Below, in pieces: positions 1-55,300 of a stretch of 64,000 nucleotides of DNA. A program made the position numbers and the translations under genes. Under the pieces are notes generated by a model. It had not been told where the DNA came from, ran no database searches, and saw only the letters and a program-made list of their open reading frames with translations. Origin of the DNA: Podarcis vaucheri (taxonomy: Eukaryota); NCBI GenBank assembly GCA_965113315.1, contig OZ220368.1; one strand, 5' to 3'. Position 1 is the stretch's first letter. Every line of letters begins with the position of its first letter.

Positions 1-829
1 GTATTTGATGCAAAATGTCTCATTTGCGTGTCAGACACATTACATTAACTCAGCTGGAAGAAGAGCCCAGGTTAAAGTAGGATTCTGTTGGGGAGAGATG
101 ATATAAGGGTGAGAGGCTCATGGGTGCTAGAATTAAACCACTACTTAGGAATGGTATAAAGGAGATATGGAAAATACTCAGTCCGGAGAACTGATGCAGG
201 TTTAGGTGCACAGCAGCCAATGTTTGTGCAGTTTCCAAGTAAGGAAGTGACATCTGGGTTTTTTTTAAAAAAGCAAAATACAATGGCTGCTTCAAGCAGG
301 TGATTATCCCTCATTCACTGCCAAGATGTCAGCCACATTAATATACTTTACCATAGCCACTATAAAACACAGGTGGCCACTTGAGATATTAGGCTACAGG
401 ATGGACATTCTTCACAAACTGAAATAAAGTTTTGCAATGATTGCCAGTAGAGTAAGCTAGTATGTAGCCTAAGATGTCTTGTTCCTTCTCTTTAAATTTG
501 TTCCAATGCCTTCAATTTTGTCTGAAAGAAAAACATGCAAGTCACAATTAAACCTGCACTGCTTATGGAGAATGTGGACCAGTAAGAAGTAAGCAGCACA
601 TAAGCGGCACACAAAGCACTACCAAACCATTCTATGTTCTAAATCTTATATTAATAATCCAAAAATTGAGACGGAAGCCACAAACATAAAACATATTCAA
701 ATTGTGTCTAAAAGGAAGATTCAGGAGAAAGACTGAATCTTCCTTTTGGCCACAATTTGAATGTTTTTTGTTTGTGGCTTCTGTCTCAATTTTGTTCCAT
801 TCATAAATAGGGCTATAGCCCAATTTTAC

Positions 830-3800
830 CTGTTTTCTTGAAGTCTCCTGCAACATCAATTCTGCAATTTTTCTTCCAGAGGGTTCCTTATTGTACAGAT
901 CTGTTGTCTCTGGCAGATAAGATTGATCAATACTCTGAAACAAATGACAAGGTCAGCTAGGATGTGATGATCTAATGTGTGGTTAGTTTGTGCTCTGAAC
1001 AGTTACTGGTAACCTTTTTAATATACATGATTTCTGACAATCCACTATAAACAAGTCATTGGCTCTGTTTTACAATTTGGCTGCACAGAAAATTGATAAA
1101 TGGTAAACATGAAAGTGAGATTGGTTTTCTCCAGTGAGTGGTTAATTAGCATTAACCACTCCTTTTGTTTTCCTGGGTAGAATGAAAAGTTTGTGATGAT
1201 TAGATTCACTTAGTATACGTACCTCTGATGTATATCTGAATTCTTCATCCCATCTTCCATCTGCTATGCGCACAATCACAGATGCACCTGGCACCAACTG
1301 GATCTGGAAGTTTCAAACTATAGCATTAAGTACATTCTTTATATGTGTGTGATTGTTGAACAAGAATAATGGTGAAACGTTGGGGATAAAGTAGGGCTCC
1401 CACGGATTGCAGGCACCTGTCATACCTGAGGCTGTTGAGGTTTTCATATAATTACAGAATATTCAAGTGCCTCCTTACTCTATACTGGAGCCTTCTACTC
1501 CAGGGTTAGTAGACCACATAAATGTTCCCCATTGCACCCAAATGAATCTGTAAAGCAGCGGTTCTCAAAGGGTGTGGCTAGAAGATTCAAGGACAATCAA
1601 ATATTTAAACATTTCAGTGTAGTATAGTATCAAAAAAAAATTATTTGCAGACTATGGATAAATATATTTACAAAAACACTAATTTGAGTTTCTTTTCCCC
1701 CCAATGTATTTCTTGCCAAACAATTTGGTATGGCGTGAGCAAGTTTTTCTGGAAGTGTGGCCGAAAGAAAAACATTTTAGAGCCACTGGTTCAGGTAAAT
1801 TTTCAATTTAAAGATTACATTATAAAGAAACATAGTCTTGTACATTGGTTTATCTGACTTAGCAGTCTTCAGCGAAGATCCCTCTGCAGCACAAACACAT
1901 TTTGGAATCCACTATTTTTTTACAATGTATTTGTATGATGGTGGGGCTGGTGTTGCAAAACACCTGTCTTGCTCCCAGAAATCTTTGTCAGCCATGCTCC
2001 TTGGAACTTTCTGCACTTGTAGTAGTGTTTGGGGTAATTGGGATTTGTGTGGTCTACCTTTTGCATCAGTTTTTGTTACTACCCTGTATAATACGATCTA
2101 GAAAAGGATTGCAAGTGCTCCCCTTACTTCACCGTTTTGCTTCTTTGATAAGTTTTGTGAAGCTACTGCTCTATGCTTAACTAGTCTCATACCTCTTTCT
2201 TTTGGAGCATGCTCTTCATAATGCTGCTGCATTTCCCTTCAGATAAGGAAGCCAGGATGATCTGTTAAGGAAAGAACAAACCTTGAACCAGAAAAGAACA
2301 AACCACCTACTGTTTCTTTGCAGCATTCTTTTAGTAGACTACTGCAAGAGATTCCTTAAGAGAGAGAAATAGAGAGAAGTGTTCCCAGAACAATACAAAG
2401 TAACATTATTGTAAAGCTTACTAATTTTGTACACACCCCAAACAACATCTTGAAATTAGAAACTGATCCCTGACTTTGGACTAAATTATAGTAGTGGGTA
2501 AAAACAAGTGGGTCAAGAGCTGGTGACACTTAAGCCAAAGATGGGGTGGGGAATGCATAGCAGCTATAGGCACTGGTTTATTCTTTGCACCATCACCACC
2601 TCCAAAAGCTGGGAGAACTAGTTGCCATTTGTACCCTTTGCCATTGCTAAGATATTTGAAGGCATTAAGCGCACACAAGTAGGGACTTCAGAAAGTACAG
2701 AAAGCTGTGGGAATGAGCCATCATTTCTTAACTGATGCTGCATTCACATAAAGCTCAAAAGTGGGGAAGTGGATATCTTTCAGCATGACAGAATGGTGAT
2801 ATACAGGGAAACATACAAAATATATAATGCGCGTGTGTGCGTGTGCTAATAAGTGCATGCCCCTGCCCAGATGCTGGAATTTGATTGTTTTTGCAAGAAA
2901 ATTGGTATGTACGTCTAACTTTTACGTGGTTGGTTAACTATACCTGACTGGGAGCCCCCTGGTATAAGGGCAGTTGGTAAATGCCGGTGTTGCAGTAACC
3001 TCTGGAAAACACATGAAGAGCTGTCCATGCCCCACTTTTCTGAGTGTAATGTAACTGTTCCCCTTTTAGCATGACTCTTCTTTGTGCTGCTTGGCATTCT
3101 TTTTCACCCGAGGCACATTGGGCAGGATTCACCACACCTTGGTACAGGTGAATAATAATGGTTGTATATTTATGGTAAACTCTGTGGGGACAGGTCTGAA
3201 AAACAGAAGTTGCAGGTTCTGAAAGGAAAGGCTGAGCCACCTGTTGTGTACAGGTTCACAAATATGAGTTTGGAAATATGGTCATCAGTAAGAAAGCTTA
3301 CACTGCACTCCACCATGGGCAGACTGCCTCATTCAAAATCATGCCAGGTCTCCTTAACACAATTAAATTTCACATACCCGGAGCCCCCTGGTATAAGGCA
3401 GTGAGCAAATGCTGGTGATATGACATGTTTCTCTGTAAAAAATATTGGGCAGCAATGGATTTATGAAAGGAATGCACACACTTCCTTTATGTGGTACAGA
3501 AATTAAGAACCCTGAGCCTCGCTGCTAGCAAAAATGTTTGAACCCCAGTAGAGTATCAAAATATAGGCTACAGATTTAGTAGGGATAGGTGGTAGGGAAT
3601 CAGCCTACTTATAGCAATACTAATTCACTAGAGAGAATGTTTCTACTTTGCTGAACTTTTCTGGAGCTAATATTTCTGCTTAAAACTCCACCTAGTTACC
3701 TTCCACACAGTGCATCTTAGTTAACTGGTTACTAGGCTCAGGAGGCCTTTAGCCGTTTTGCTGTAGACTCTGCTGAATAAGACAGATTACTTGTGAAAAA

Positions 3801-4222
3801 TACCAGATAAACCAGTGTTGAAATACAGATTGGTTCCTTCTTACAGCATGGGACCCATCTTACTGAAAGGCAACGACCTATCCTTTGCTGAGTGGAACAC
3901 CCAGTGTCATCTTTTTTTAGTTGTAGGCCATTCAGAGTCCTGTGACTGAAGGGTGGCTTACAGAGTGACGAACAACAAAATAAAGGATGTGATACCTTGA
4001 AGCCATCAAGCCACACAGGCCATTGCTGGTAGCTGTTTTTGTCAAGCTCCTCAACAAAGATGGGGTAATCATACTTCAGCCACTGGGCCCCAAAGTAACA
4101 TGCCCCAGGTGGATTGAAGCAGAACTGGGCGATTGTCAAGCCAGACCATGGTAAGTTCATGCCTCTGTCCAATGCAAACTGGAATACCACAGAGTTTAGA
4201 TGTCAGTCTGGATAAGAGCACT

Positions 4223-4256
<34 letters not shown>

Positions 4257-7200
4257 CCAAGGCTTAATTTGCTCACAAACATGAAAGACTAAATTTGTTT
4301 CTCAACTATACCATTTCAAATTACTCTGACATGCCAGTTTTCTGTGAGCAGGGAATTTTTGTCCTTAGCAGTATGAAGTAATACAGCTAAGAAAGTCAAC
4401 TTGTTTAGAAAATTAAGAATACTAGTGGTTGTCTTCAGAAGTTGATAAATGCCTGTTAATCAACATGTACCTAAAGGCACAGCAACAGAGACCAGGTTAA
4501 AGGTTGATAACTATTTTCAAGTGCAGAAATTTCTTAAGACTGGTTATGAGGAGGCAGAATTCCTTATTTCCATATCTCTGTATAGTATTCTATCCCAGTC
4601 ATGTATAAAATTTTGTGCTAAACAGGGCATTTCTGTGAATGTGATAGCTATTCACCTTGATGCCATAGGTGGGAATGTATCTGGAGACATAGGTGAGGCT
4701 AAAAGGCTGTGGACTGCTGCCTGGCACCCGGGTTAGTTTCTGATGGATCCAGGTGACAATCTCCTCATCTGTGCATAAACTCTTAGGACCTTCAAGCTGG
4801 TGAACTATTTCCCGCACTGAAACAACAGACCTGTGTGAAACAAAAAGCTGTTTTTGCTGTGGCCCACAGTTATGGAATTCTATAATTATTTCCTACCAAA
4901 GTGTGTTGATGCATGGGGCAAGACCCTTGGCTCACCCTTCTGTTAATCTGATTTGAATGTAAGATGGACTGTTGTTTTGTAAGGTTCCTCCTGCCCTTTG
5001 ATTAAAAAAAAATAACCCAATCAATAGGCTCATCAAATACATAGTCCACCATAGAACACACTATAATAACTCAGCTTTTATGTATGTGACTACAGTGAGA
5101 CCAAAAATTCTTAAAAGTAATAGCTGGCAGTCCTCTTAAGGGAGACTTTTCCACAATTGCTATGATTCCATCTTTTTTACTTCCATCCATCCTGCAACCA
5201 CTGAGGAGACAGAAACTCAGTTTACCTGTTGGTCATGGCTTCATAGAAGCAACTTTCTCCTGCAGTAGGCTTGGCCGAGTCTGAGTAATAGACACCATCA
5301 GAATAGTCAGGCCTGGCCTGAAAGAGGCCCACTTTGGCCCAGTTTGCCTGAGGGACCATGCTTCTTTGTAACGTTTGATGGCTGGAATTTACAGGTGCCT
5401 TGATAAGCCTCACTAGCAGGGTTGCACAGGGCACATACCTACAGGGAAAGTGAGAAGACAGATATTAAGAAAGCTAGTTTGATGATAAGATGGGGAAGAA
5501 ATTGGAAATGATGTAAGTGAGAGGGGCTCACCGTCCTATTGATGTCAGAGAGCTGGTAGAGAAGGGCTGATCTGGGCAGGGACTGTTGTGAAAAATACGG
5601 AGCTGATGAGCACCATCATTGAGGGAGACCTGAGGAAAATAGTAATCAACATCTATCCACAGACCCCTTTTTCCTCCTTCTTGGGAAACAGGTAATGGGA
5701 AATATATTGTGTTCCCCTCCTACCATTTGCATCTGAACTGTGGAGAGACAGCAAGATTTTGGGGTAGGGCTCCAGGTCACACAGCAGTTATGGTGGGGTG
5801 GGATTTTTGGCATGGCACTAGAAAGCATGAGCATTAATAGTAAAACCCTATCCTGTGAGATCTAGTGGGAATGTGAAACATTCTTGTAGCACTTTGGTTG
5901 TCAGCAAAAGAATGAGAGTTCCTGAAATACCCATGAAGAAGGAAGGCATTTTCCTGCTGGAGCCTATCAGCATTATAAACCATGTCCTAACTTCATTTTC
6001 AGAACTGAGGCTGCTTCCCCTGAATTCCCCTTCAGTTAAATCACCTGGATCCCCTTGGCCTCTGGTTCAGGGGCTTTGTGTGTTCCACATTCCACAAAAA
6101 CATTGAGAGCTGCCCAACCGATCTGGATGAGCTCAGAGGTTAAGCGATTGATGGAATAAACCTGTAAAATACAAAGGGACATTAGTTCATTCCCCCCTGG
6201 CAGCTAGACCCATAGTTCTGTTTTGTGTTGGAGGTGAGGTGGAGGTCAGGAAGATGTTGCCATAATGTCCTCCATTAAGAATATAATAGCACTGCAGAAT
6301 CAGACCAAGGGCCCACCTAGTCCAGCATGCTGTTCTCATGGCCAACTAGATGCCTATAGGAAGCAACTAGTGGCCAACTAGATGCCTATAGGAAGCCTGC
6401 AAGCATTCTGCTGTCTTTTGAAGACACGCCTCAGCCTGCTTACACAGGCATTCCCTTCATCTCGACCTGAGTCTCCAGTTTTAACTACTACTTTGTTTTA
6501 GTATACACCTGTTTTGTTGCATTTTAATTATGGGTGTTTATATTTTAATGTTTGTGCAACTCTTATATTTTGTAGGGTGCTTAGAAGCCTATTTTGGCAT
6601 TAAACAGTAAATAAATAGCACCAACAATACTATTCCCACTTGTGTTCCCCAGCAACTGGTATTCGGAGATATAATGCCTCTGCCACTGGAGCCATTAATA
6701 GCACCCAGTTCTAATATGATGAGAGAAGGAGAAAAATGTCTCTCTACCCAGTTTATCCTCAGCATTCATAATTTTATACAGCTCCGTCAATTGCCTCCTT
6801 ACTTTTTTTTCTAAACTAAAAAGCCCCAAATGATGTAACTTTTCCACACAGGGGAGTTGTTCCAGCTCCATTTCAGGAAAGGAAAGATCATTAACTTCCT
6901 AACTCTTGACCCCCCACAGGACATGCTTCATTCATTGGTAGCATTCTTTGCACGCCCTTTACCCATACCAACACAAACCTTTAACAGAAGAGTTGCACAA
7001 GGCGCTATCACTGGCTCTCTGATTTCAACTGAGTAGTTGTAAAATGGATCAAATATGCTGCTATTCAGGTCAATCCCAGTGCAAATGTCTGGCCCAATTC
7101 TGAAAGGAAGAAGCAGAAACAACCTTCAGCTAAATGTTTTCCATAAGAGGGCATTGTTAAGCTCCTCTGTTGTCGTGGCACCTTGAACTGAAGCAAAACC

Positions 7201-10200
7201 CTTTGCGTGCTTCAGGACATAGCCATAGAAACATTAAAATCAGGGGTAGGAGACTGAGGGTCATTCTGTCTGGAAGTCTTGCACAGACAGAACAATTGTG
7301 AGAGTGCCCCATTGAATCCCACCCATAGCATGTATGCAGCCTGGGAGAAGCAGAGGAAAGATGGCATTTTAGGGAAGAAAAACCCAGAGAACTGTTCCTC
7401 CTTACTGCATGAAACCACTGGTGAAGATACGAGCAGTGACCCTGGTAACAGTGACACCATCAGGCAGGAAGCGGGCTCCATCAATGTATAGATCAAAGCC
7501 ATCTCCAGCTCTGAAAGGCTCTACAGGAGGTGTCTCCCTGAAATGATGAATAAAAGCTTCCTGTGGGGGGAAAAGTTGTGATGATACTAAATGGCCATTT
7601 TACTGCACTTTCACTCAGTTTTAGAGGTCCTTTTGTTTTAACAATCCCGAAGAGCTTATTATCATGAGCAAACATAAATGCAATTCTTTGTAAACAAATG
7701 TAGAGAAATGCATGCTGGTGCAAAAATCTTAATGCCACATATACTCTCAATGGGGTCTGAAGTAGCAGTGATTGACCAGGAACGAGACCTGGGGGCCATA
7801 GTAGATAGCTCAATTAAGATGTTGATCCAGTGTGCAGGAACTGTGAGAAAGGCAAAATCCATGCTAGGGATCACTAGGAAAGGAACTGAGAATAAAATTG
7901 TTGATACCATAATGCCTTTATACAAATATATGGTGTGACTGCATTTGGAATTCTGTGTACCGTTCTGGTCACCTCACCTCAAAAAGGATATTGTGGTGTT
8001 GGAAAAGGTTCACAAAAGGGCAACCAAAATGATCAAGAGAATGGTGCAACTCCCCTATGAAGGAAGGCTGCAGATTTGGGACTTTTTGGTTTAAAGAAAA
8101 TGTGCATGAGATGTGACACATGTTTATAACATTAAGCATGGCATAGAGTATATGGAGAAAAGTTATTCTTCCTCTCTCATAACACCAGAACTCCTGAAGA
8201 CCCAATGAAGCTGAATTTTGGAAGATTCAGGACAGATAAAAGAACTGTAAACTGCAGTGCCCAGAATTCTTTGAAGGAAAGGAAGTGCTTCAGATACGCT
8301 TTAAAGGTATAATACGTATGCAGCCAGATTGTGAACTGAGTGGAGGTGGTAGGTCTGTCCCAATTATCCCAAGCCCTGTAGGGACTGTAAAACCGTCCTT
8401 GCCCAGCACTCACATGAGGCCAGGTTTTTGCTGGGTCAAGTGGAGGTGGTGACTCTGGTGGAAAAGGTTGCTCAGGTTTCTGGGTGCTGAAGACGTGCAG
8501 CCTTAAAGTAGCATCACCATATATCTTGAAGTCCTGATGATTCTCTTCCATTGACTAGGAGCAAAGCATTATGTGCAGATGGGAATGAAACAAGAGGAAA
8601 GCATAATAAGGCACAGCTTAAAACATGGGGCTTCATCCAGTGCACATAGCTCCACTGGCACAACATAAATTCCATTTCTTCTGCCCCCATGTGCTTCCAC
8701 CACATGCATAGCAGTGTTTTATTCCAGTGGAGCTGCAGCACTGGAATCAACACACAGCAGAATGGAGGCTTAACCAATGATTCAGTCCTCCTAAGTATTA
8801 CATACTGTTGCTGCCATATAAAATATTGCTCTGTGAAGATTACAGTTGTAAGTCTTTACTAGAGTAAGCCAGTAAGGAGTGTTGCATCAATAAGAGCAGC
8901 AAGACCAAGCCAGGCATTAGATGTTTAACATCTCTTCAGCCTTTTGATGGTGTATTAATATTGGCGTACTTTACCTACCTGGTTAACCTTGGTTTGCTTT
9001 ACAGGAGTGGACTTACCATCACTGACAGAGTTACAACAGGTGGCACAGGGCCATGATACAGAGTCAGTGTATGAGTCCCTGTGTTCCAGACAGGCATCCC
9101 ATGTTCCCCTTTCTTCATTGCACCTGTGCAAGCAGAATGCAGAAAACTTAATTCCTAGACTAGTAATAGGAAAACCTTAATTCCTGTGGGGAATCATAGC
9201 ACCAGGCAAACAGAAATGCCTGCAGCATACCTGTAACCATCACTTTATGGGATTCATACATCTTGGTCAGTCTGAGCACAGCCCAGGCAGCCAGCCATTC
9301 ATCACTCCCTAGTAGTGGCTGGTGTTGAGGCTTGAATCCTTTGTCCCAGGGGGTAGGTGCTACCCTCCCACTGGGCCAGTGGTAAAAGCGAGCAATAAGG
9401 ATCATGTCCTGCTGCGGCTCAACATCCCAAAAGATTTCCTGAAGGAAACAAAAAGAAGCAGTTCAGGTGAGCCAAGAGTAGTGCTATAATTTCCAGCACC
9501 TTCTACCCTTCAATTCCCTCTGCTATGCACCATATTCAAAAACCACCTAACTGTTTTCATGGATTAGGAATGAGCATGTTTTTCTCTGAGCTCAGACCGG
9601 CTTTTACACCATTGGCAAGAAAACCCAAAGCCCATATTTTGCAAACAAGCAACATGATTGCTTCTTATAGTTAGGCATGGGCATCCACAATAATTATCCC
9701 CAGGATTGGGGAAAGTAAATACTCTAAACCAATGTAAATACTTATCTAGCATCAGAGAACTGGTCTACCATTTCTGGTAACAGGTGACTGAGTGGTGGTG
9801 AGGTCTGAGCAAACTTGGCCTCTGAGAAACAAATACAGTGGTACCTCGGGTTAAGAATTTAATTCGTTCTGGAGGTCCGTTCTGAACCTCAAACTGTTCT
9901 TAACCTGAAGCACCACTTTAGCTAATGGGTCCTCCCGCTGCCGCTGCACCGCCGCCACACGATTTCTGTTCTCATCCTGAAGCAAAGTTCTTAACCCGAG
10001 GTGCTATTTCTGGGTTAGGGGAGTCTGTAACCTGAAGCGTCTGTAACCCAAGATACCACTGTACAGTATTCTAGTGCTTGCAGCAATGGTAGTGCTGAGT
10101 AACCATCTAATCAGTGCAAGGATAATAATCTGTCTGAGGACACTCTGTGAACTTCTCAGCTGGACTGGGATGTAAACCTAAGTCCATCTCCAAGCCTAAT

Positions 10201-10602
10201 GCTCTCCTGCCAAAGCACCATTCTATACCTCCTGTTCTCCAAACACGAAGTAGCCATGTTTAATATTGGATCTCATGGAATCGGTGCAGTAATTCAGTCC
10301 CGAGTCCTTGGTGGCAATCACCTGAAATCAAGTTTGAGAAAAATGTAACACATGGTCCAACTTCCTTTTTAAGCTTTCTTGGTGTTTCTTCCTAACCAGG
10401 GTGCCAGCTGAACACCACTATGACACTGGGGCTATTGACAGAGCCACACATGTTCCGTACCTGACCAGTTTTCTGATGGTAACCAGTTAGCCGGACAGCC
10501 CCATCTCCTGGTGGGGCGCCTTTTACTCTATCAAGGATGAACCCTAATTGTCTTCTTTCATTCTGCTGGGATTGTGGCCACTCGAGCACTGCTTCAATTT
10601 TC
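830..10602 (-). CDS. Uncharacterised multi-exon gene encoding three tandem C2-like domains (at least 16 exons, about 753 codons; both ends unresolved)
   Basis: Minus-strand exons, all GT-AG with consistent phases and no stops: 10602-10461, 10321-10229, 9438-9231, 9123-9017, 8554-8414, 7560-7406, 7099-6979, 6161-6045, 5629-5532, 5438-5226, 4830-4656, 4178-3996, 3195-2944, 2261-2193, 1303-1223, 934-830. Peptides include GDGFDLYIDGARFLPDGVTVTRV, IGWAALNVF, VSLNDGAHQLRIF, RYVPCATLLVRLIKAP, GLFQARPDYSDGVYYS, FCFNPPG, WPVWLDGFK and GYCNTGIYQLPLYQGAPS. The C2-like call is inferred from motif pattern only. Confidence 0.88.
4224..4254. repeat. (AC)n microsatellite
   Basis: Direct dinucleotide run in an intron. 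Confidence 0.95.
6279..6860 (-). mobile_element. CR1-type LINE 3' end in reverse orientation, with an internal 26-bp duplication and a probable nested L2-like tail
   Basis: AAGAATATAA...GGGCCCACCTAGTCCAGCATGCTGTTCTC resembles the reverse complement of reptile CR1 3' ends. TGGCCAACTAGATGCCTATAGGAAGC occurs twice (about 6339-6396). An L2-like tail lies at about 6410-6620. Boundaries are approximate. Confidence 0.6.
7625..8245 (+). mobile_element. CR1 LINE ORF2 C-terminal fragment (degenerate)
   Basis: Translation MQFFVNKCREMH...QERDLGAIVDSSIKMLIQC...KAKSMLGI...IMPLYKYMV and HLEFCVPFWSPHLKKDI match the CR1 RT C-terminus. Stops are present. Confidence 0.9.
9836..10061. mobile_element. Tc1/mariner-type MITE
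   Basis: TIRs CAGTGGTACCTCGGGTTA ... TAACCCAAGATACCACTG with TA on both sides. Same family as 57928-58168. Confidence 0.88.
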
Positions 10603-12527
10603 CTGAAATAATCAGAGGCTTATTAACTCACTGCTCTTCAGCTGTTGCCCCTGTCTTTCAACAGCAAACAGCACCTTTCCCCTTCTCAAACAGCAAAATG
10701 GCAGTTCCCCACCAAATCAGAACCTTGCTAGATTAAGCAATAAAGCTGGGTTACAAGAAAAGTAGAGAGCAATTGATCCAGTACAATTATGGCAGCCCAG
10801 ATTTCCATCTTTACCACTTCTGAAACAGTGTCTCTCCTGGATCCTTTCCTCTTCTAAATAGGTTGGATAAAACTTCTTCAGGAGACCACGAGGAAGTTCT
10901 TTCTCTAGCCAGCAGAAGGGCATTTTACTGTGACATCAAATACAGTGTATATACTGTATATCTGGCTATTAAAGCCAAGTAGAACAAGCGTCTCATTGCC
11001 AATTTCTATTGTGACAGCATAATGTGGAGAGAAATATAATATACCCCTGCAAAGGAAAAGCCAAACTATACTTCGTATTTACCTAGGAAGGTATGGAGAA
11101 GCCTTTGGTTTCTGTTTCTGGGTGCTGCCAGTGCCACAGCCAGGGAGGTAACAGGGAGAGATGGGGGGAAATGAAAAAAAAGAGGGGAAGGTTGATGTAT
11201 GTGAGCATACTGCAGCACAAAGGCCAGAAAGGGGTTTCTTGAAGAACCATATATACTGCCCAGCTGGGTGTTAGGGGAGCAGAGAAGGAATGTTAAAGGT
11301 AGTTGATTATATAGGGGTAAGAGTAAGTAAAATGTGACAAATAAGAAAGGACATAGGAAGGAAAAATACTTTTGCTGAGTTTAATTTATATGCATGAAGG
11401 TTCCTCTTGGGAAGATCTGGTGAATCATGTGTACAGTATTTCATTAGCAAGCTACAGGACAACTCCGCAACATGCAAAACTGAAATAGGCTCATACCAAA
11501 TAATAAGTCAACTACCACAAGCTGGAGACTGGCATGAGGTAGTCTAAAAAGATGGCAGAAAGCTGAATGGAATCTTTCTACCTGATATATTTGGTCAAGT
11601 ACTCCATCCCTACTCCTTTTCTGTATCTGGAGTGAGCAATGGTGTTGCACCTCCCTTTTTCAGTAGCACATTCTCGACAAAATTGCCATTGAAAATATTA
11701 GGCACTGAAAGTAATCACAATAATCACAATATTGGGAATAAAACTGAATGAGGCCCAATACAAGTAAGATTCTCAACTATAGAAGAAGCCATGTTGATGT
11801 GGAACAAAATAAGGCAATAGGTTTATGGCTACTGAATGAAGAAAAAGACAAAGAAGAAAGAAGCACAGTCTAAAAGGAAGTCAGCTTGGGGGCTGCTTCT
11901 CTTGTTATACAGTTCATGAGAAGTTGCTTCAGAATCATTTCCCTCTTTGTTTTATCACGCTCTGATCTAGGTGACATTTGGGGCATGAATATGAAAATAG
12001 CTAGTGTGCAATTATTTGTTTTTCATATTATGTACTAATTGTTGTTGGCATTCATTTGTCTCGGGAGGCAATGGAGGAATGCACCTTTGGAGGTGAAGTC
12101 AAACTGTTGGAAGGTTGTAACTCCTGTAGAGATGTGGGAGAGACATGTTTTGTTAAGTTGCTAAAATCACTAGGCACAGTACAATGGCTTTTAAAAAGAA
12201 GGCGTCCTACAGATTTGCACCAGTTTTAGAGCCCACAAACACAGGGATGCACTTATTGATGAGCACATAAGGAAGGAAACATCAAAGAGAGCAAGCAGCT
12301 TCTAAAGAAACAAAAATAGAAGATGTTACTTCTTGGTAGCCTACATTTATTGGTATTGGCCTTAGCCAATTCTAAAACTTAGACTTTACTAAGCCAGGGT
12401 GGCCTCTTACATACATCCCTGCTGGTACCATGACAGTCAGCATTTCCTACCTAAAGGAAATAGGCAAATGCTGACATTTTCCATTGGCAGAAGCCTCCTT
12501 TTTCAAAGAGATTCTAGATGAGTGGGA

Positions 12528-13675
12528 AATAATAATAATAATAATAATAATTTATTATTTGTACCCCGCCCATCTGGCTGGGTTTCCCCAGCCACTCTGG
12601 GCGGCTTCCACAGAAACCAAAAAACACTAAAATATCATACATTAAAAGCTTCCCTGAATAGGGCCGCCTTAAGATGTCTTCTGAATGTCAGGTAGTTGTC
12701 CATCACCTTGACATCCAATGGGAGGGCATTCCACAGGGCGGGCGCCACCACCGAAAAGGCCCTCTGCCTGGTTCCCTGTAGCTTCGCTTCTCGTAATGAG
12801 GGAACCGCCAGAAGGCCCTCGGCGCTGGACCTCAGTGTCCGGGCAGAACGATGGGGGTGGAGACGCTCCTTCAGGTATACTGGGCCGAAGCCGTTTAGGG
12901 CTTTAAAGGTCAACACCAGCACTTTGAATTGTGCTCGGAAACGTACTGGGAGCCAATGTAGGTCTTTCAAGACCGGTGTTATGTGGTCTCGGCGGCCGCC
13001 CCCAGTCACCAGTCTAGCTGCCGCATTCTGGATTAGCTGTAGTTTCCGAGTCACCTTCAAAGGTAGCCCCACGTAGAGCGCATTGCAGTAGTCCAAGCGG
13101 GAGATAACTAGAGCATGCACCACTCTGGCCAGACAGTCCGCGGGCAGGTAGGGTCTCAGCCTGCGTACCAGGTGGAGTTGGTAGACAGCTGCCCTGGATA
13201 CAGAATTGACCTGCGCCTCCATGGACAGCTGTGAGTCCAAAATGACTCCCAGGCTACGCACCTGGTCCTTCAGGGGCACAGTTACCCTATTCAGGACCAG
13301 GGAGTCCTCCACACCAGCCCGCCTCCTGTCCCCCAAAAACAGTACTTCTGTCTTGTCAGGATTCAACTTCAATCCATTAGCCGCCATCCATCCTCCAACC
13401 GCCTCCAGGCACTCACACAGGACCTTCACCGCCTTCACTGGTTCTGATTTGAAAGAGAGGTAGAGCTGGGTATCATCTGCATATTGATGGACACCCAGTC
13501 CAAACCCCCTGATGATCTCTCCCAGCGGCTTCATATAGATGTTAAAAAGCATGGGGGAGAGGACGGAACCCTGAGGCACCCCACAAGTGAGGGCCCAAGG
13601 GTCTGAACACTCATCCCCCACCACCACTTTCTGAACACGGCCCAGGAGGAAGGAGCGAAACCACTGTATAACCAC
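12528..13675 (-). mobile_element. Young 5'-truncated L2-clade LINE (RT C-terminal half, 3' UTR and ATT-repeat tail)
   Basis: Uninterrupted ORF 12635-13723 with GVPQGSVLSPMLFNIY, QYADDTQLY, LNPDKTE, SRLDYCNALY and HWLPVRFR. CpG-rich. (AAT)n tail at 12528-12552 on the plus strand. Confidence 0.95.
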
Positions 13676-14834
13676 TCTGGGGTACTGACCAGAACAGTTT
13701 CTAGGAGGTAGGGACAGAACCACTTTAAAATGCTAATTTAGCAGATGTTACCAAGATGCTTAGAATTTTCAGAGGGGAATGACTCTTGCAGTCGCTGAGA
13801 GAACCTTCTTCTTCTTGTTGTTGGCATCCCTTGATGTCACTAAAATATAATACACTTAAATATTATCCAGTGGTGATCCCTTAAAGATTAAAGAGGGAAG
13901 AGTTGCAGAATTGATCACTTCAAAAGGGTGGATGGGGCACTAATTCTAAAGGAAGAGGGTGAATATTTCAGCAATATTTTTTGTGGGGGTTTTTGTTTGC
14001 ATTTCACAAGCACTTCAAGTACATGACTTCCAATATAAAGTAATCACACTGAAATTGACTCAGAGGAATAATTAGAAACATGATCCTATCAGCCTACTTT
14101 AATAGAGGCAGTTTGGTTTTAGAGAGGATTTTTGTATTCTTTTTTTTTTAGGACTAAAAAGGTGCCTGCTATATCCTCTCCAATGCATAAACCAAGCCAA
14201 AGGCAGTGTCCTCAGCATTTGCTAATGAGGCAGCCTCTGAATATAGGATGTTCCAGTTAGCTGCTATTGATAGACTGACATGCCATGAATGTGTGAATGT
14301 ATTTAATCTTGTAGTGATAGGCATGGACAGACACACACAACAAGGAAGACTCTAGATAATCATGACAGAAGAATTACATTTTTAGGGATCATATGTACAA
14401 ACAGTCATTCTAAACACATTTTGGTGTTCTGCTGCCAATGGGAAGGTCAGGAGAAATCTCTCCTTGTGGTATGGTATAGTCCATGGAAAGAAAATATTAA
14501 TTGATGTTGTGCTTTAGTTTATATGGTCAGTTGCAGGCAGAGTAGACTATAACTACCCTCTGCTGTGCAGATGGGTAAGTACATCCAATCCTGCCACCAT
14601 CAAAACCTCATGCAGATGCACTCTTAAAAACAGCCCCCATATCCTTAATTAAAAATACAGAGAAAATCACAGACGTGGGTGGATTAGAGATGCATAATAT
14701 TTAGTTGTTTCATTTATACACAAAACACACAGAGACGTATACAAAGGAAGACAGTAGGCATTTCTGTGCTGACTTATCTTCGTTAGAAGGAAAGCCTAGT
14801 CCTGAAAGGAGAAAGGGGTGGTCTTCCTCCTTTC

Positions 14835-24697
<9,863 letters not shown>

Positions 24698-28535: not shown

Positions 28536-51020
<22,485 letters not shown>

Positions 51021-52364: not shown

Positions 52365-55300
52365 GGTAATGTGGTTGTAAGAGGCTTCTTTATTCAACAA
52401 AATGCATTTTATAGAAAGAAAAGAGGAAGAAAAAGAATTTTGAAGGAAATGATGTGTTATGAAAAAATATTAGAGGACAAACCAGGTGATAAAGTTTGTA
52501 TTCAGAAACTGAAAATACTACAAACGCAGTTTGCCATGATCACACAGAATGAAATAGAGCAACGACTAAAAAGCTTTAAAACAAAAACAATTTGAGTTTG
52601 CCAATAAGCTGGGAAAGTTACTAGCGTGGCAGCTTCAAAGGGAGAAAACCCCCAATATAATAAACAAGATAATAGTAGGGGAAGAGGGTATATAACCAAA
52701 AAGAATTCAGAAAAGAAATTTTAAGATACTACTCAATTTTGTACGTGAATGGAAAGGAGAGTGAGAAAGACATAGAAGAATATTTGCAAAAATGTTATCT
52801 ACCACAGCTAACAAAGGACGAAGTAGATAGTCTGAATGCCCCCATCTCAATGACGGAAATAGATGTACCTATCAAGCAGGCAAAGTCTGGCAAACCACCT
52901 GGTCTGGATGGACTTTCAGTCGCATATTATAAAACATTAAGAGAAACATTACCACGCCCCTTAAAGATATTATGAATGAAAGTTTATAAGGGAGAACAAT
53001 ACCAACATCGTAGAAGAACGTTTACATTACTCTAATCCCCAAACAGGGGATTAGATCAGGATATACTCCAACCCAAGACCTACAGGCTGATCTCCTTACT
53101 GAACAATGATTATAAGTTGTGCACTGCAATAATGGCAAAAAAGCTGATGGTGGTCCTAGAATCACCTATTCATGAGGATCAAGCAGGTTGTTTTTTTACC
53201 AAGGAATAATACTAGAAATGTGATCAAATACTTGGAAAAAAGAAATGAAAAAGAAGCAGCACTAATATTCCTCTATGCTGAAAAGGCCTTTGACAATGTG
53301 TTCTGGGTCTTCCTGAGGAAATTAGTGGAGAATGCTGTTCTGAATGCCATACTCTCTAATGGGATAAATGCAGTATACACAGAGCAATAGGCAAGCTTAA
53401 TAATAAATAGTAATGTCACAGAAAAAAGTAGTATCAAGAAGGGGACAAGGCCGGGATGCCCCCTGTTGCCACTGTTGTTTATCCTAATACGTATTAGAAG
53501 TGTTAACTAGAGAAATACGAAAAATGATGAAATAACAGGAATTAAAGTTGGGCAGAGAGAATACAAAGTGAAAGCCTTTGCGGACGACGTGTTGATGTTG
53601 GAAAATTCGATGGAAAGCGTCTCAAGGGCAATAGAAACTATAACAAAATTTGGCAACTTGGCAGGATTCTATATAAATAAGGAAAAAACAAAAATGATAG
53701 TAAAAAAATTAGACTTACAGGCAAAAGAAAGACTTGAGAATATGATGGGAATTAAAACAGAAAAATATTTGGGGATATGGATATCAGCTAAGAATTTAAA
53801 CCTTTTTCAGGATAACTATGTTAAAATCTGGAATGAAATAAAAAGAATCTAGAAAAATGGACTAGACTGAACCTTTCTTTGTTAGGAAGAATATCCGCAG
53901 TCAAAATGAATGTTTTGCCCAAGATGATCTTCTTATTTCAAACACTCGTGGTAATAGCCCAAACTGTTTCAAAATGTGAAAATAGGACGTGACAAACTTC
54001 ATTTGGTAGGGGGGAAACCCGAATTAAGTATACAAATCTGACAGATGTAAGAGAAAGAGGGGACTTTGCCCTTCCAGACCTTAGATTTTATTATGAGGCA
54101 GCGTGTCTTTGTTGGATGAAAGAATAGATGGAGCTAAGAGATACCAACATTTTAGACCTAGAAGGTTTTGATCTACACTTTGAATGGCAGGCATATCTGC
54201 ATTACGACAAATCAAGGGTGCACAAAGGTTTCCAAAACCATGTCATAAGTATATACACGGTTTGGCAGCGACACAAAGATCTTTTAGAGAGAAAACCCCA
54301 AAAATGGATATCCCCAACTGAGGTGGTCTCAGTGAAAAGGTTGAATATGGACTAATGGGCCACTTACAAAGTTTAAAGAAGGAGGAGTTCACCTAAAAAA
54401 AGGAGAAGAGATTTGGGGTCATACTATAGATTGGTTTCAGTATTTTCAGGTGAACGAGTTACCGGTATTTAAAAGAGATAAGGAAAAGGGATTGGCGGAA
54501 ATGAGTTCAGAATTTGAAAAAAATGTATTAGGAAAGGATGATAAATTACTGGTAATCTCAAAATTTTATAAAGTGTTATTGGAGTGGGAGACCAAAGATG
54601 AGATGGTAAAGGCGACAATGACAAAATGGGCCATAGATATTGGTTGCAACATAGAATTGTCCACATGGGAAAAATTATGGGGGGGAAACCATGAATTTTT
54701 CTGCCTGTTATTAAGGAAAACCTACAAAAGATGATGTACCAGTGGTACTTGACAACCCAACAAATTAGTGAAAATGTATAAAAAAGGGTCTAATTTATGC
54801 TGGAAGTGCCACGAGGTAGAGGGAACCCTGATTCATATGTGGTGGTTGTGTAAATACTCTAGAGCAGGCATCCCCAAACTCGGCCCTCCAGCTGTTTTGG
54901 GATTACAACTCCCATCATCCCTAGCTAACAGGACTAGTGGTCAGGGATTATGGGAATTGTAGTCCCAAAACAGCTGGAGGGCCGAGTTTGGGTATGCCTG
55001 CTCTAAAGAATAATTAAAGATTTTAAAATTCACATTTCCCAAAAGACCAGAGGCCTTCCTGTTAGGGATAATCGATGATGGCATTCCAAAAAAGGCATTC
55101 AATATCTTTCTGCACGCAATCGCTGCAGCTAGAATAGTATATGCAAAAAAATGGAAAGAAGTAGAGATACCCACGAAGGAAACTTGGTAAAGCAAACTGA
55201 TAGAATATGTAGAATTAGTAACCTTGACTGCAAAACTAAGGAATAAGGATGAGTTAAAGAGAAGAGTAGAGTGGAGGTATTTTGGAGATTATCTTAGAGG

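Follow-up and report, generated by a model that had tools for sequence, protein, structure and literature searches.

In the human fallopian tube, CCDC17 serves as a marker of ciliated cells (PMC13096173), and the DNAAF9 interactome of airway multiciliated cells includes it as a ciliary tip protein (PMC12700831). The gene is already named and annotated, though barely characterised. The mammalian-type short protein (~600 aa in marsupial and monotreme models) shares its zinc finger, coiled coil and CCDC17_C domain with the CCDC17 of lizards, ends after a VDPPP motif, near the position at which the lizard gene carries a stop codon within a splice donor, and lacks the three downstream C2 domains of the lizard long form. 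Orthologous models of that long form are available from the lacertids Podarcis muralis (XP_077784914.1) and Zootoca vivipara (XP_060132934.1), of 1455 aa each, and Podarcis lilfordi (CAI5777312.1), of 1454 aa. Here we analyse a block of exons at positions 830-10602, minus strand, of a 64,000-nt stretch of Podarcis vaucheri DNA (GCA_965113315.1, contig OZ220368.1; hereafter the window, which is free of N runs). In all likelihood, this block corresponds to all but one of the final 17 coding exons of CCDC17, a gene that extends from approximately 24697 to 492.

Exon borders were set by tblastn of orthologous proteins on the window combined with inspection of splice sites, and the reading frame was verified by an exon-by-exon phase walk in which only the split codon was carried over each junction. 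Homology searches used single exons or database orthologues as queries. The initial annotation, which had been made from the sequence of the window, described the block as a gene of 16 exons spliced into one open frame of about 753 codons with matching phases, and the phase walk confirms this structure: from 10602 to 830, each of the 16 exons has an AG acceptor and a GT donor, the phases agree, there are no in-frame stops, and the summed length of 2260 nt corresponds to one carried base plus 753 codons. The fifteen peptide motifs quoted for the block, located by eye in minus-strand listings of open reading frames (ORFs), are likewise all present in the open stretches of 830-10602. Two features had been overlooked: the frame is open at both ends, with 10602 a splice acceptor and 830 a splice donor, and a terminal coding exon lies at 521-495. 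The block ORF has no start codon of its own; its first in-frame ATG lies at approximately codon 64, within the first C2 domain of the block, and a stop sits just upstream of acceptor 10602. When the terminal exon is included, 17 exons retain intact AG and GT borders and phases and remain stop-free over 762 codons. No polyadenylation signal was found between the terminal exon (521-495) and the window edge. The coding elements of the gene, all on the minus strand and with domains 1 to 3 numbered within the block, are as follows.

16113..24697 (outer limits approximate), minus strand: CCDC17 coding exons 1-13, seen as 13 collinear tblastn matches to Podarcis lilfordi CCDC17 (P0215), most at 95-100% identity
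14839..14996, minus strand: CCDC17 exon 14, the junction exon, 158 nt; ends in AAAAG followed by the donor GTGAGA; an RNA contig ends exactly at 14839
14835..14837, minus strand: TGA stop of short CCDC17, within the splice donor and read only on intron retention
11083..11124, minus strand: optional mini-exon, 42 nt, in frame and without an ATG; included in RNA contigs and skipped by the lacertid RefSeq models
10461..10602, minus strand: CCDC17 block exon 1, 142 nt; strands 1-2 of domain 1; starts at an acceptor, has no in-frame ATG and is covered by an RNA contig
10229..10321, minus strand: CCDC17 block exon 2, 93 nt; carries the first in-frame ATG of the block ORF
9231..9438, minus strand: CCDC17 block exon 3, 208 nt; central and W strands of domain 1
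9017..9123, minus strand: CCDC17 block exon 4, 107 nt; NxG strand of domain 1
8414..8554, minus strand: CCDC17 block exon 5, 141 nt; last strand of domain 1
7406..7560, minus strand: CCDC17 block exon 6, 155 nt; strands 1-2 of domain 2
6979..7099, minus strand: CCDC17 block exon 7, 121 nt; central strand of domain 2, in the region of sub-threshold PI3K_C2 similarity
6045..6161, minus strand: CCDC17 block exon 8, 117 nt; W strand of domain 2
5532..5629, minus strand: CCDC17 block exon 9, 98 nt; NxG strand of domain 2
5226..5438, minus strand: CCDC17 block exon 10, 213 nt; completes domain 2 with its last strand and opens the helical linker
4656..4830, minus strand: CCDC17 block exon 11, 175 nt; continues the helical linker and opens strand 1 of domain 3
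3996..4178, minus strand: CCDC17 block exon 12, 183 nt; strands 1-2 of domain 3
2944..3195, minus strand: CCDC17 block exon 13, 252 nt; carries the central, W and NxG strands of domain 3 and served as the query through which the family was recognised
2193..2261, minus strand: CCDC17 block exon 14, 69 nt; helices inserted in domain 3
1223..1303, minus strand: CCDC17 block exon 15, 81 nt; last strand of domain 3
830..934, minus strand: CCDC17 block exon 16, 105 nt; C-terminal tail, ending at a donor without a stop
492..521, minus strand: CCDC17 terminal coding exon, 27 nt (521-495) plus a TAA stop (494-492); its C-terminus matches orthologues P0045 and P0050

A phmmer search with the 84-aa exon at 3195-2944 against 1.8 billion representatives returned a 1233-aa protein at 67% identity, and further matches reached 1454 aa, bore the name CCDC17 in gecko, alligator, toad and bonefish, and included a 1323-aa relative from oyster. 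By tblastn, gecko CCDC17 (P0001) is collinear with the window from 20954 to 806, and complete lacertid CCDC17 proteins (1454-1455 aa) align collinearly from a start codon near 24697 down to 821, and the block is therefore very probably the 3' half of CCDC17. The matches of P0001, P0045, P0215, P0217 and P0220 all occur in order, with lacertid per-exon matches of at least 85% identity averaging 94-96%. Moreover, the lacertid long models are collinear with the window exon for exon, share the same residues at the 14839-to-10602 junction and the same C-terminus, and omit the 42-nt mini-exon present in RNA contigs. Exons 1-13 encode an N-terminal C2H2-like zinc finger, a coiled coil and a first C2-like domain (CCDC17_C, PF28455, Pfam 38.1), the Pfam names being taken from precomputed hits and the ESM Atlas. 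We are confident that CCDC17 has 31 coding exons at this locus, or 32 with the mini-exon, and a product of ~1455 aa. It is similarly probable that the block encodes C2 domains 2-4 of a long CCDC17 that is built of the zinc finger, the coiled coil, CCDC17_C, three more C2 domains and a short helical tail.

The treatment of this locus in RefSeq has changed over time. Older RefSeq models of Podarcis muralis divide it into a protein of 581 aa and LOC114599101 of 689 aa, those of Zootoca vivipara into 694 aa and 715 aa, and those of Lacerta agilis into 694 aa and 689 aa. In the newer builds for Podarcis muralis and Zootoca vivipara, the two models have been merged into a single 1455-aa CCDC17 with the exact 14839-to-10602 junction, and many fish, frog and reptile annotations are still split. 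The sequence first taken for an unnamed gene is real and coding, and it carries the name CCDC17 in sister lizards, where it is annotated as such (1455-aa RefSeq models). Because the block matches a named gene with mammalian orthologues, the proposal of a new gene fails. The associated statement that mammals have no orthologue is wrong for CCDC17, whose mammalian orthologues measure ~600 aa and stop after the first C2-like domain; the triple-C2 part had no mammalian match in the protein database search.

The exons of the block are clearly under constraint. Comparison of the window with contigs from the related species that was the source of the RNA data, about 2% diverged from the window (~2.5% in introns), shows 2 differences in 392 exonic nt and 65 in 2647 intronic nt (Fisher p = 0.009), such that exon divergence is one fifth of intron divergence. 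An alignment of 42 orthologues contains 30 invariant columns, and residues that are invariant from fish to oyster are retained in the window.

The connection between the block and upstream CCDC17 lies at the junction of exon 14. When read without splicing, the frame continues past exon 14 with an Arg codon and then TGA, the donor being AG/GTGA (slash at the exon end). When spliced, acceptor 10602 supplies a G that completes AGG, and the frame continues for ~760 more codons. Block exon 1 is joined in frame to CCDC17 exon 14996-14839 either directly, as in the RefSeq models, or via the 42-nt mini-exon, as in RNA contigs, and additional residues occur at the mini-exon position in gecko P0001. RNA was assessed over window positions 9001-15000 using two contig runs and two raw RNA sequencing (RNA-seq) runs from the related species. 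One RNA contig joins 10229-10319, 10459-10601 and a stretch from 11083 onward, and another joint connects 11124 to 14839. All RNA joints have GT..AG ends on the minus strand, and single raw RNA reads back two joints, among them 10319/10459, which is present in an RNA contig and one raw read. Taken together, these thin data connect the block to CCDC17 exon 14 through the joints 14839/11124, 11083/10602 and 10461/10321. The intron at 11082-10603 has no coverage in RNA contigs. At intron 14838-11125, retained and spliced forms both exist. Because the TGA lies within the donor, intron retention leads to a mammal-like protein with one C2-like domain. In the mechanism we propose, retention of this intron would produce short CCDC17, while its removal would produce long CCDC17 with three more C2 domains.

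The threefold internal repeat noted in the block is borne out when the repeat units are compared with hhalign, which provides moderate profile-profile support at the level of aligned sequences. Using the orthologue alignment, domain 1 matches domain 2 with a probability of 92% (E 5e-7), domain 1 matches domain 3 with E 2e-4, and domain 2 matches domain 3 with E 2.4e-4 over 152 columns; the upstream CCDC17_C domain matches domain 3 with E 6e-4. An AlphaFold2 model of the 805-aa Amia protein, which represents the triple-repeat part only, has a mean pLDDT of 82.4 and a pTM of 0.75, and is predicted to form three blocks of eight β-strands each, joined by a helical linker. Residue by residue, the five motif rows quoted by the initial annotation map onto strands 1, 5, 6, 7 and 8 of domain 1, and domains 2 and 3 each follow the same eight-strand pattern in this model.

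Structural comparisons of models of orthologues (Amia, Albula), rather than of the joined protein of the window, support the assignment of the three repeats as C2 β-sandwiches, in agreement with what had been expected of an AlphaFold and Foldseek check. The best Foldseek matches of the whole Amia model are the multi-C2 proteins otoferlin, dysferlin, myoferlin, E-Syt2 and the copine BON1, with additional matches to the C2 domains of PI3K-delta and AIDA, to DOCK5 and to C2-bearing chains of ciliary central-pair maps. With VIA-align, domain 1 superimposes on the DOCK180 DHR-1 C2 domain (3l4c) with a Z of 12.1 and an rmsd of 3.6 over 152 residues, and on dysferlin C2A, AIDA and PI3K C2 with Z of ~11. 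Domain 3 was also modelled alone from a 308-aa Albula fragment (pLDDT 78.8) and compared with 48,161 PDB chains independently of Foldseek; the top 50 matches are all C2 domains, headed by PLC-beta3 C2 (4gnk; Z 10.5), myoferlin C2A (10.1), DOCK180 (9.7), AIDA (9.5) and CEP120 (8.1). For domain 2, a C2 fold is suggested by its eight predicted strands, its 92% profile match to domain 1 and a sub-threshold similarity to PI3K_C2. This Pfam family (PF00792) scores 20.7 bits at best on orthologues (E ~4e-4, in 7/42), below its gathering threshold of 26.4. No Pfam family reaches threshold on any exon or orthologue of the triple-C2 part, and ten exon-sized open stretches of the window gave nothing meaningful with Pfam, PI3K_C2 included. 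ESM Atlas features, which we treat as leads only, point to NPHP4_C2_2nd (0.93; 184/256 features), Aida_C2 (0.90) and CCDC17_C (0.86). For the NPHP4-type C2 (PF28126), alignment-based searches gave no match, with the caveat that this model may be absent from the Pfam copy used. The ESM Atlas was uninformative on the single 84-aa exon (best 0.79), and a profile search of PDB sequences returned coiled-coil noise only.

It can be asked whether the block is an independent downstream gene that has its own promoter and encodes a triple-C2 protein of ~700-800 aa on its own, in which case the fused models would be artefacts of read-through. Several observations weigh against the single long gene that we favour and lend themselves to this alternative. 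Many RefSeq annotations split the locus into a CCDC17 of ~690 aa and an 'uncharacterized LOC' of ~690-800 aa (split models are found in Lacerta agilis, Podarcis raffonei, Rhineura, Elgaria, Amia and Pristis), models from Xenopus, Amia and Elgaria start the downstream part with a methionine of its own, as in the 784-aa ccdc17.L of Xenopus laevis, and RNA contigs frequently keep the intron that separates the two parts. The RNA evidence for splicing is itself thin and comes from a species that is ~2% diverged: the 11124/14839 joint is a single contig with a depth of 6 whose shorter side measures 28 letters, and contigs that retain intron 14838-11125 have a depth of ~11-12 compared with 6-10 for spliced ones, all these depths being rough. 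Nevertheless, we consider an independent gene unlikely. The block has no ATG before approximately codon 64, and initiation at that codon would remove strands 1-2 of domain 1; block exon 1 begins at an acceptor that is used, and spliced contigs tie the block to CCDC17; the newer Podarcis muralis and Zootoca vivipara builds have merged both models; and the invertebrate orthologues are single fused proteins.

The RNA also has to be weighed against the idea that these are former CCDC17 exons in decay, untranslated in this lineage as they apparently are in mammals. The sampled RNA runs show low expression, with zero RNA depth over the exons within 9001-9800, and the short form that retains the intron seems to be the commoner one; the long form may be a minor isoform. 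A decaying relic is nonetheless extremely improbable, given that 17 exons keep their AG and GT borders, phases and an open frame over 762 codons, that protein identity to other lacertids remains high by the per-exon measure given above, and that reduced exon divergence is accompanied by retention of the fish-to-oyster invariant residues. Little more probable is a repeat built on another β-sandwich, such as an Ig-like, MSP/PapD-like or B9 fold. The sub-threshold Pfam results leave room for such a fold, as does the C2 call for domain 2, which comes from strand prediction and sequence comparison. In contrast, the unbiased structural search with domain 3 recovered C2 domains only among its top 50, domain 1 matches the C2 domains of DOCK180, dysferlin, AIDA and PI3K at Z 11-12, the best Foldseek matches of the whole model are multi-C2 ferlins and E-Syt2, and the sole Pfam signal, PI3K_C2, is located in domain 2. 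We therefore retain the reading of the block as the C2-bearing 3' half of a single CCDC17 gene.

The suggestion that the module is ancient is upheld by protein searches, which place triple-C2 proteins from sponge to reptiles. The Amia triple-C2 protein has 62 database matches, covering turtles, crocodilians, squamates, amphibians, lungfish, sharks, rays, sturgeon, Amia and elopomorph fishes among vertebrates, and amphioxus, a hemichordate, molluscs, annelids, a brachiopod and coral among invertebrates. A sponge cluster includes a 1523-aa member, and fused proteins of 1300-1520 aa occur in sponge, oyster, snail, annelid, hemichordate and amphioxus. None of the 62 matches to the triple-C2 part in this protein search is from a mammal or bird. 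A search with short alligator CCDC17 returned short models of ~600-700 aa in many vertebrates; marsupial and monotreme models measure 575-738 aa, and in those inspected the conserved VDPPP motif lies close to the end. Of 120 short models in the database, 45 terminate in ...NQR or ...NKR, the ending that read-through of an AG/GTRA donor yields; they belong to squamates, turtles, frogs, caecilians, sharks, Amia and salmonids. A second paralogue, 'CCDC17-like' (~650-670 aa), whose C-terminus differs (...SARTQ or ...LFEEFE), is found in sharks, sturgeons, gar, salamanders and teleosts.

The simplest reading of this distribution is that the ancestral form was long, that the stop within the donor is old, and that mammals, birds and most teleosts have lost the 3' exons or no longer have them annotated; mammalian genomes may still hold relics. 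A fuller scenario, which we put forward tentatively and to which we give slightly less than an even chance, combines a metazoan-ancestral CCDC17_C plus three C2 domains with an isoform switch by an AG/GTRA stop-in-donor in jawed vertebrates and loss of the 17 exons by mammals, birds and most teleosts. If this is true, the human CCDC17 of the ciliary tip would be a truncated remnant.

Other elements of the window include several repeats within the gene. A (CA)n microsatellite at ~4200-4262, in the intron upstream of exon 4178-3996, reads as VCVCVC and THTHTH in ORFs; Tandem Repeats Finder returned nothing at a score of at least 150 over the whole window. The intron between exons 10321-10229 and 9438-9231 contains a region, 9801-10200, with very high summed depth and 'opposite strands' joints (9853/10048) in all four runs, which looks like a dispersed SINE-like repeat with inverted structure that lies outside the gene product. 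At 12638-13732 (minus strand), also within a CCDC17 intron, a 365-codon open stretch with reverse-transcriptase motifs marks a LINE fragment. A related-species contig skips from 12519 to 13675 with ~18 other letters in between, so the insertion is absent in the related species and probably lineage-specific; the high RNA depth over 12638-13732 stems from other LINE copies. Outside CCDC17, an open stretch at 46024-46335 (plus strand) bears a kinesin motor signature and is probably an exon of a neighbouring kinesin-13 (KIF2-like) gene, and several open stretches with LINE ORF2 reverse-transcriptase motifs at 52600-54800 (plus strand) coincide with a strong purine skew at 52-56 kb (GC skew 0.19, AT skew 0.22).

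With regard to function, the proposal of a ciliary protein receives indirect support from the use of CCDC17 as a marker and from its reported ciliary-tip location (PMC13096173, PMC12700831), and a role for the C2 domains is deduced only from their fold and context. On these grounds, the three extra C2 domains most likely have a lipid- or protein-docking role. They would add membrane-phosphoinositide- or protein-docking surfaces to CCDC17 and would anchor or scaffold it at the ciliary membrane-microtubule interface. We found no paper that connects CCDC17 to C2 domains, and none on its three extra C2 domains or the stop-in-donor switch.

For annotation, these results mean that the locus should be treated as one gene, CCDC17, rather than as CCDC17 and an uncharacterised LOC. 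They also concern a protein that is in wide use as a marker for multiciliated cells and that, in its ancestral form, has three additional C2 domains; the choice between long and short CCDC17 offers a handle for work in ciliated epithelia of frogs or lizards. A stop codon within a splice donor is a tidy example in its own right and may have eased the evolutionary truncation of the gene. The locus represents no new kind of system; what remains of interest is an architecture with three additional C2 domains, a choice of isoform at a stop within the donor, and a module that seems to have been lost more than once.

Among known systems, the block domains have an eight-stranded C2 sandwich in common with DOCK DHR-1 (3l4c), PI3K C2 (PF00792) and AIDA C2 (2qz5), with Z of 11-12 for domain 1 and 9-10 for domain 3. 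Identity to these domains is only 8-15%, and the domain context of DOCK, PI3K and AIDA is absent from CCDC17. The C2 domains of DOCK, PI3K and AIDA, non-canonical and structurally nearest to those of the block, are regarded as calcium-independent, which is only suggestive for those of the block. CEP120, with three tandem C2 domains, the C2 domains of NPHP4 and the C2 chains of central-pair and ciliary-tip structures (9nw3_3A, 7som_G, 9ijj_k) show no detectable sequence homology to the block, and the likeness is one of architecture and not of family membership. What they share with long CCDC17 is the arrangement of tandem C2 domains in a cilium-associated protein, with structural scores for the block domains of Z 8.1 to CEP120 C2A and Z 8.9 to 9nw3_3A.

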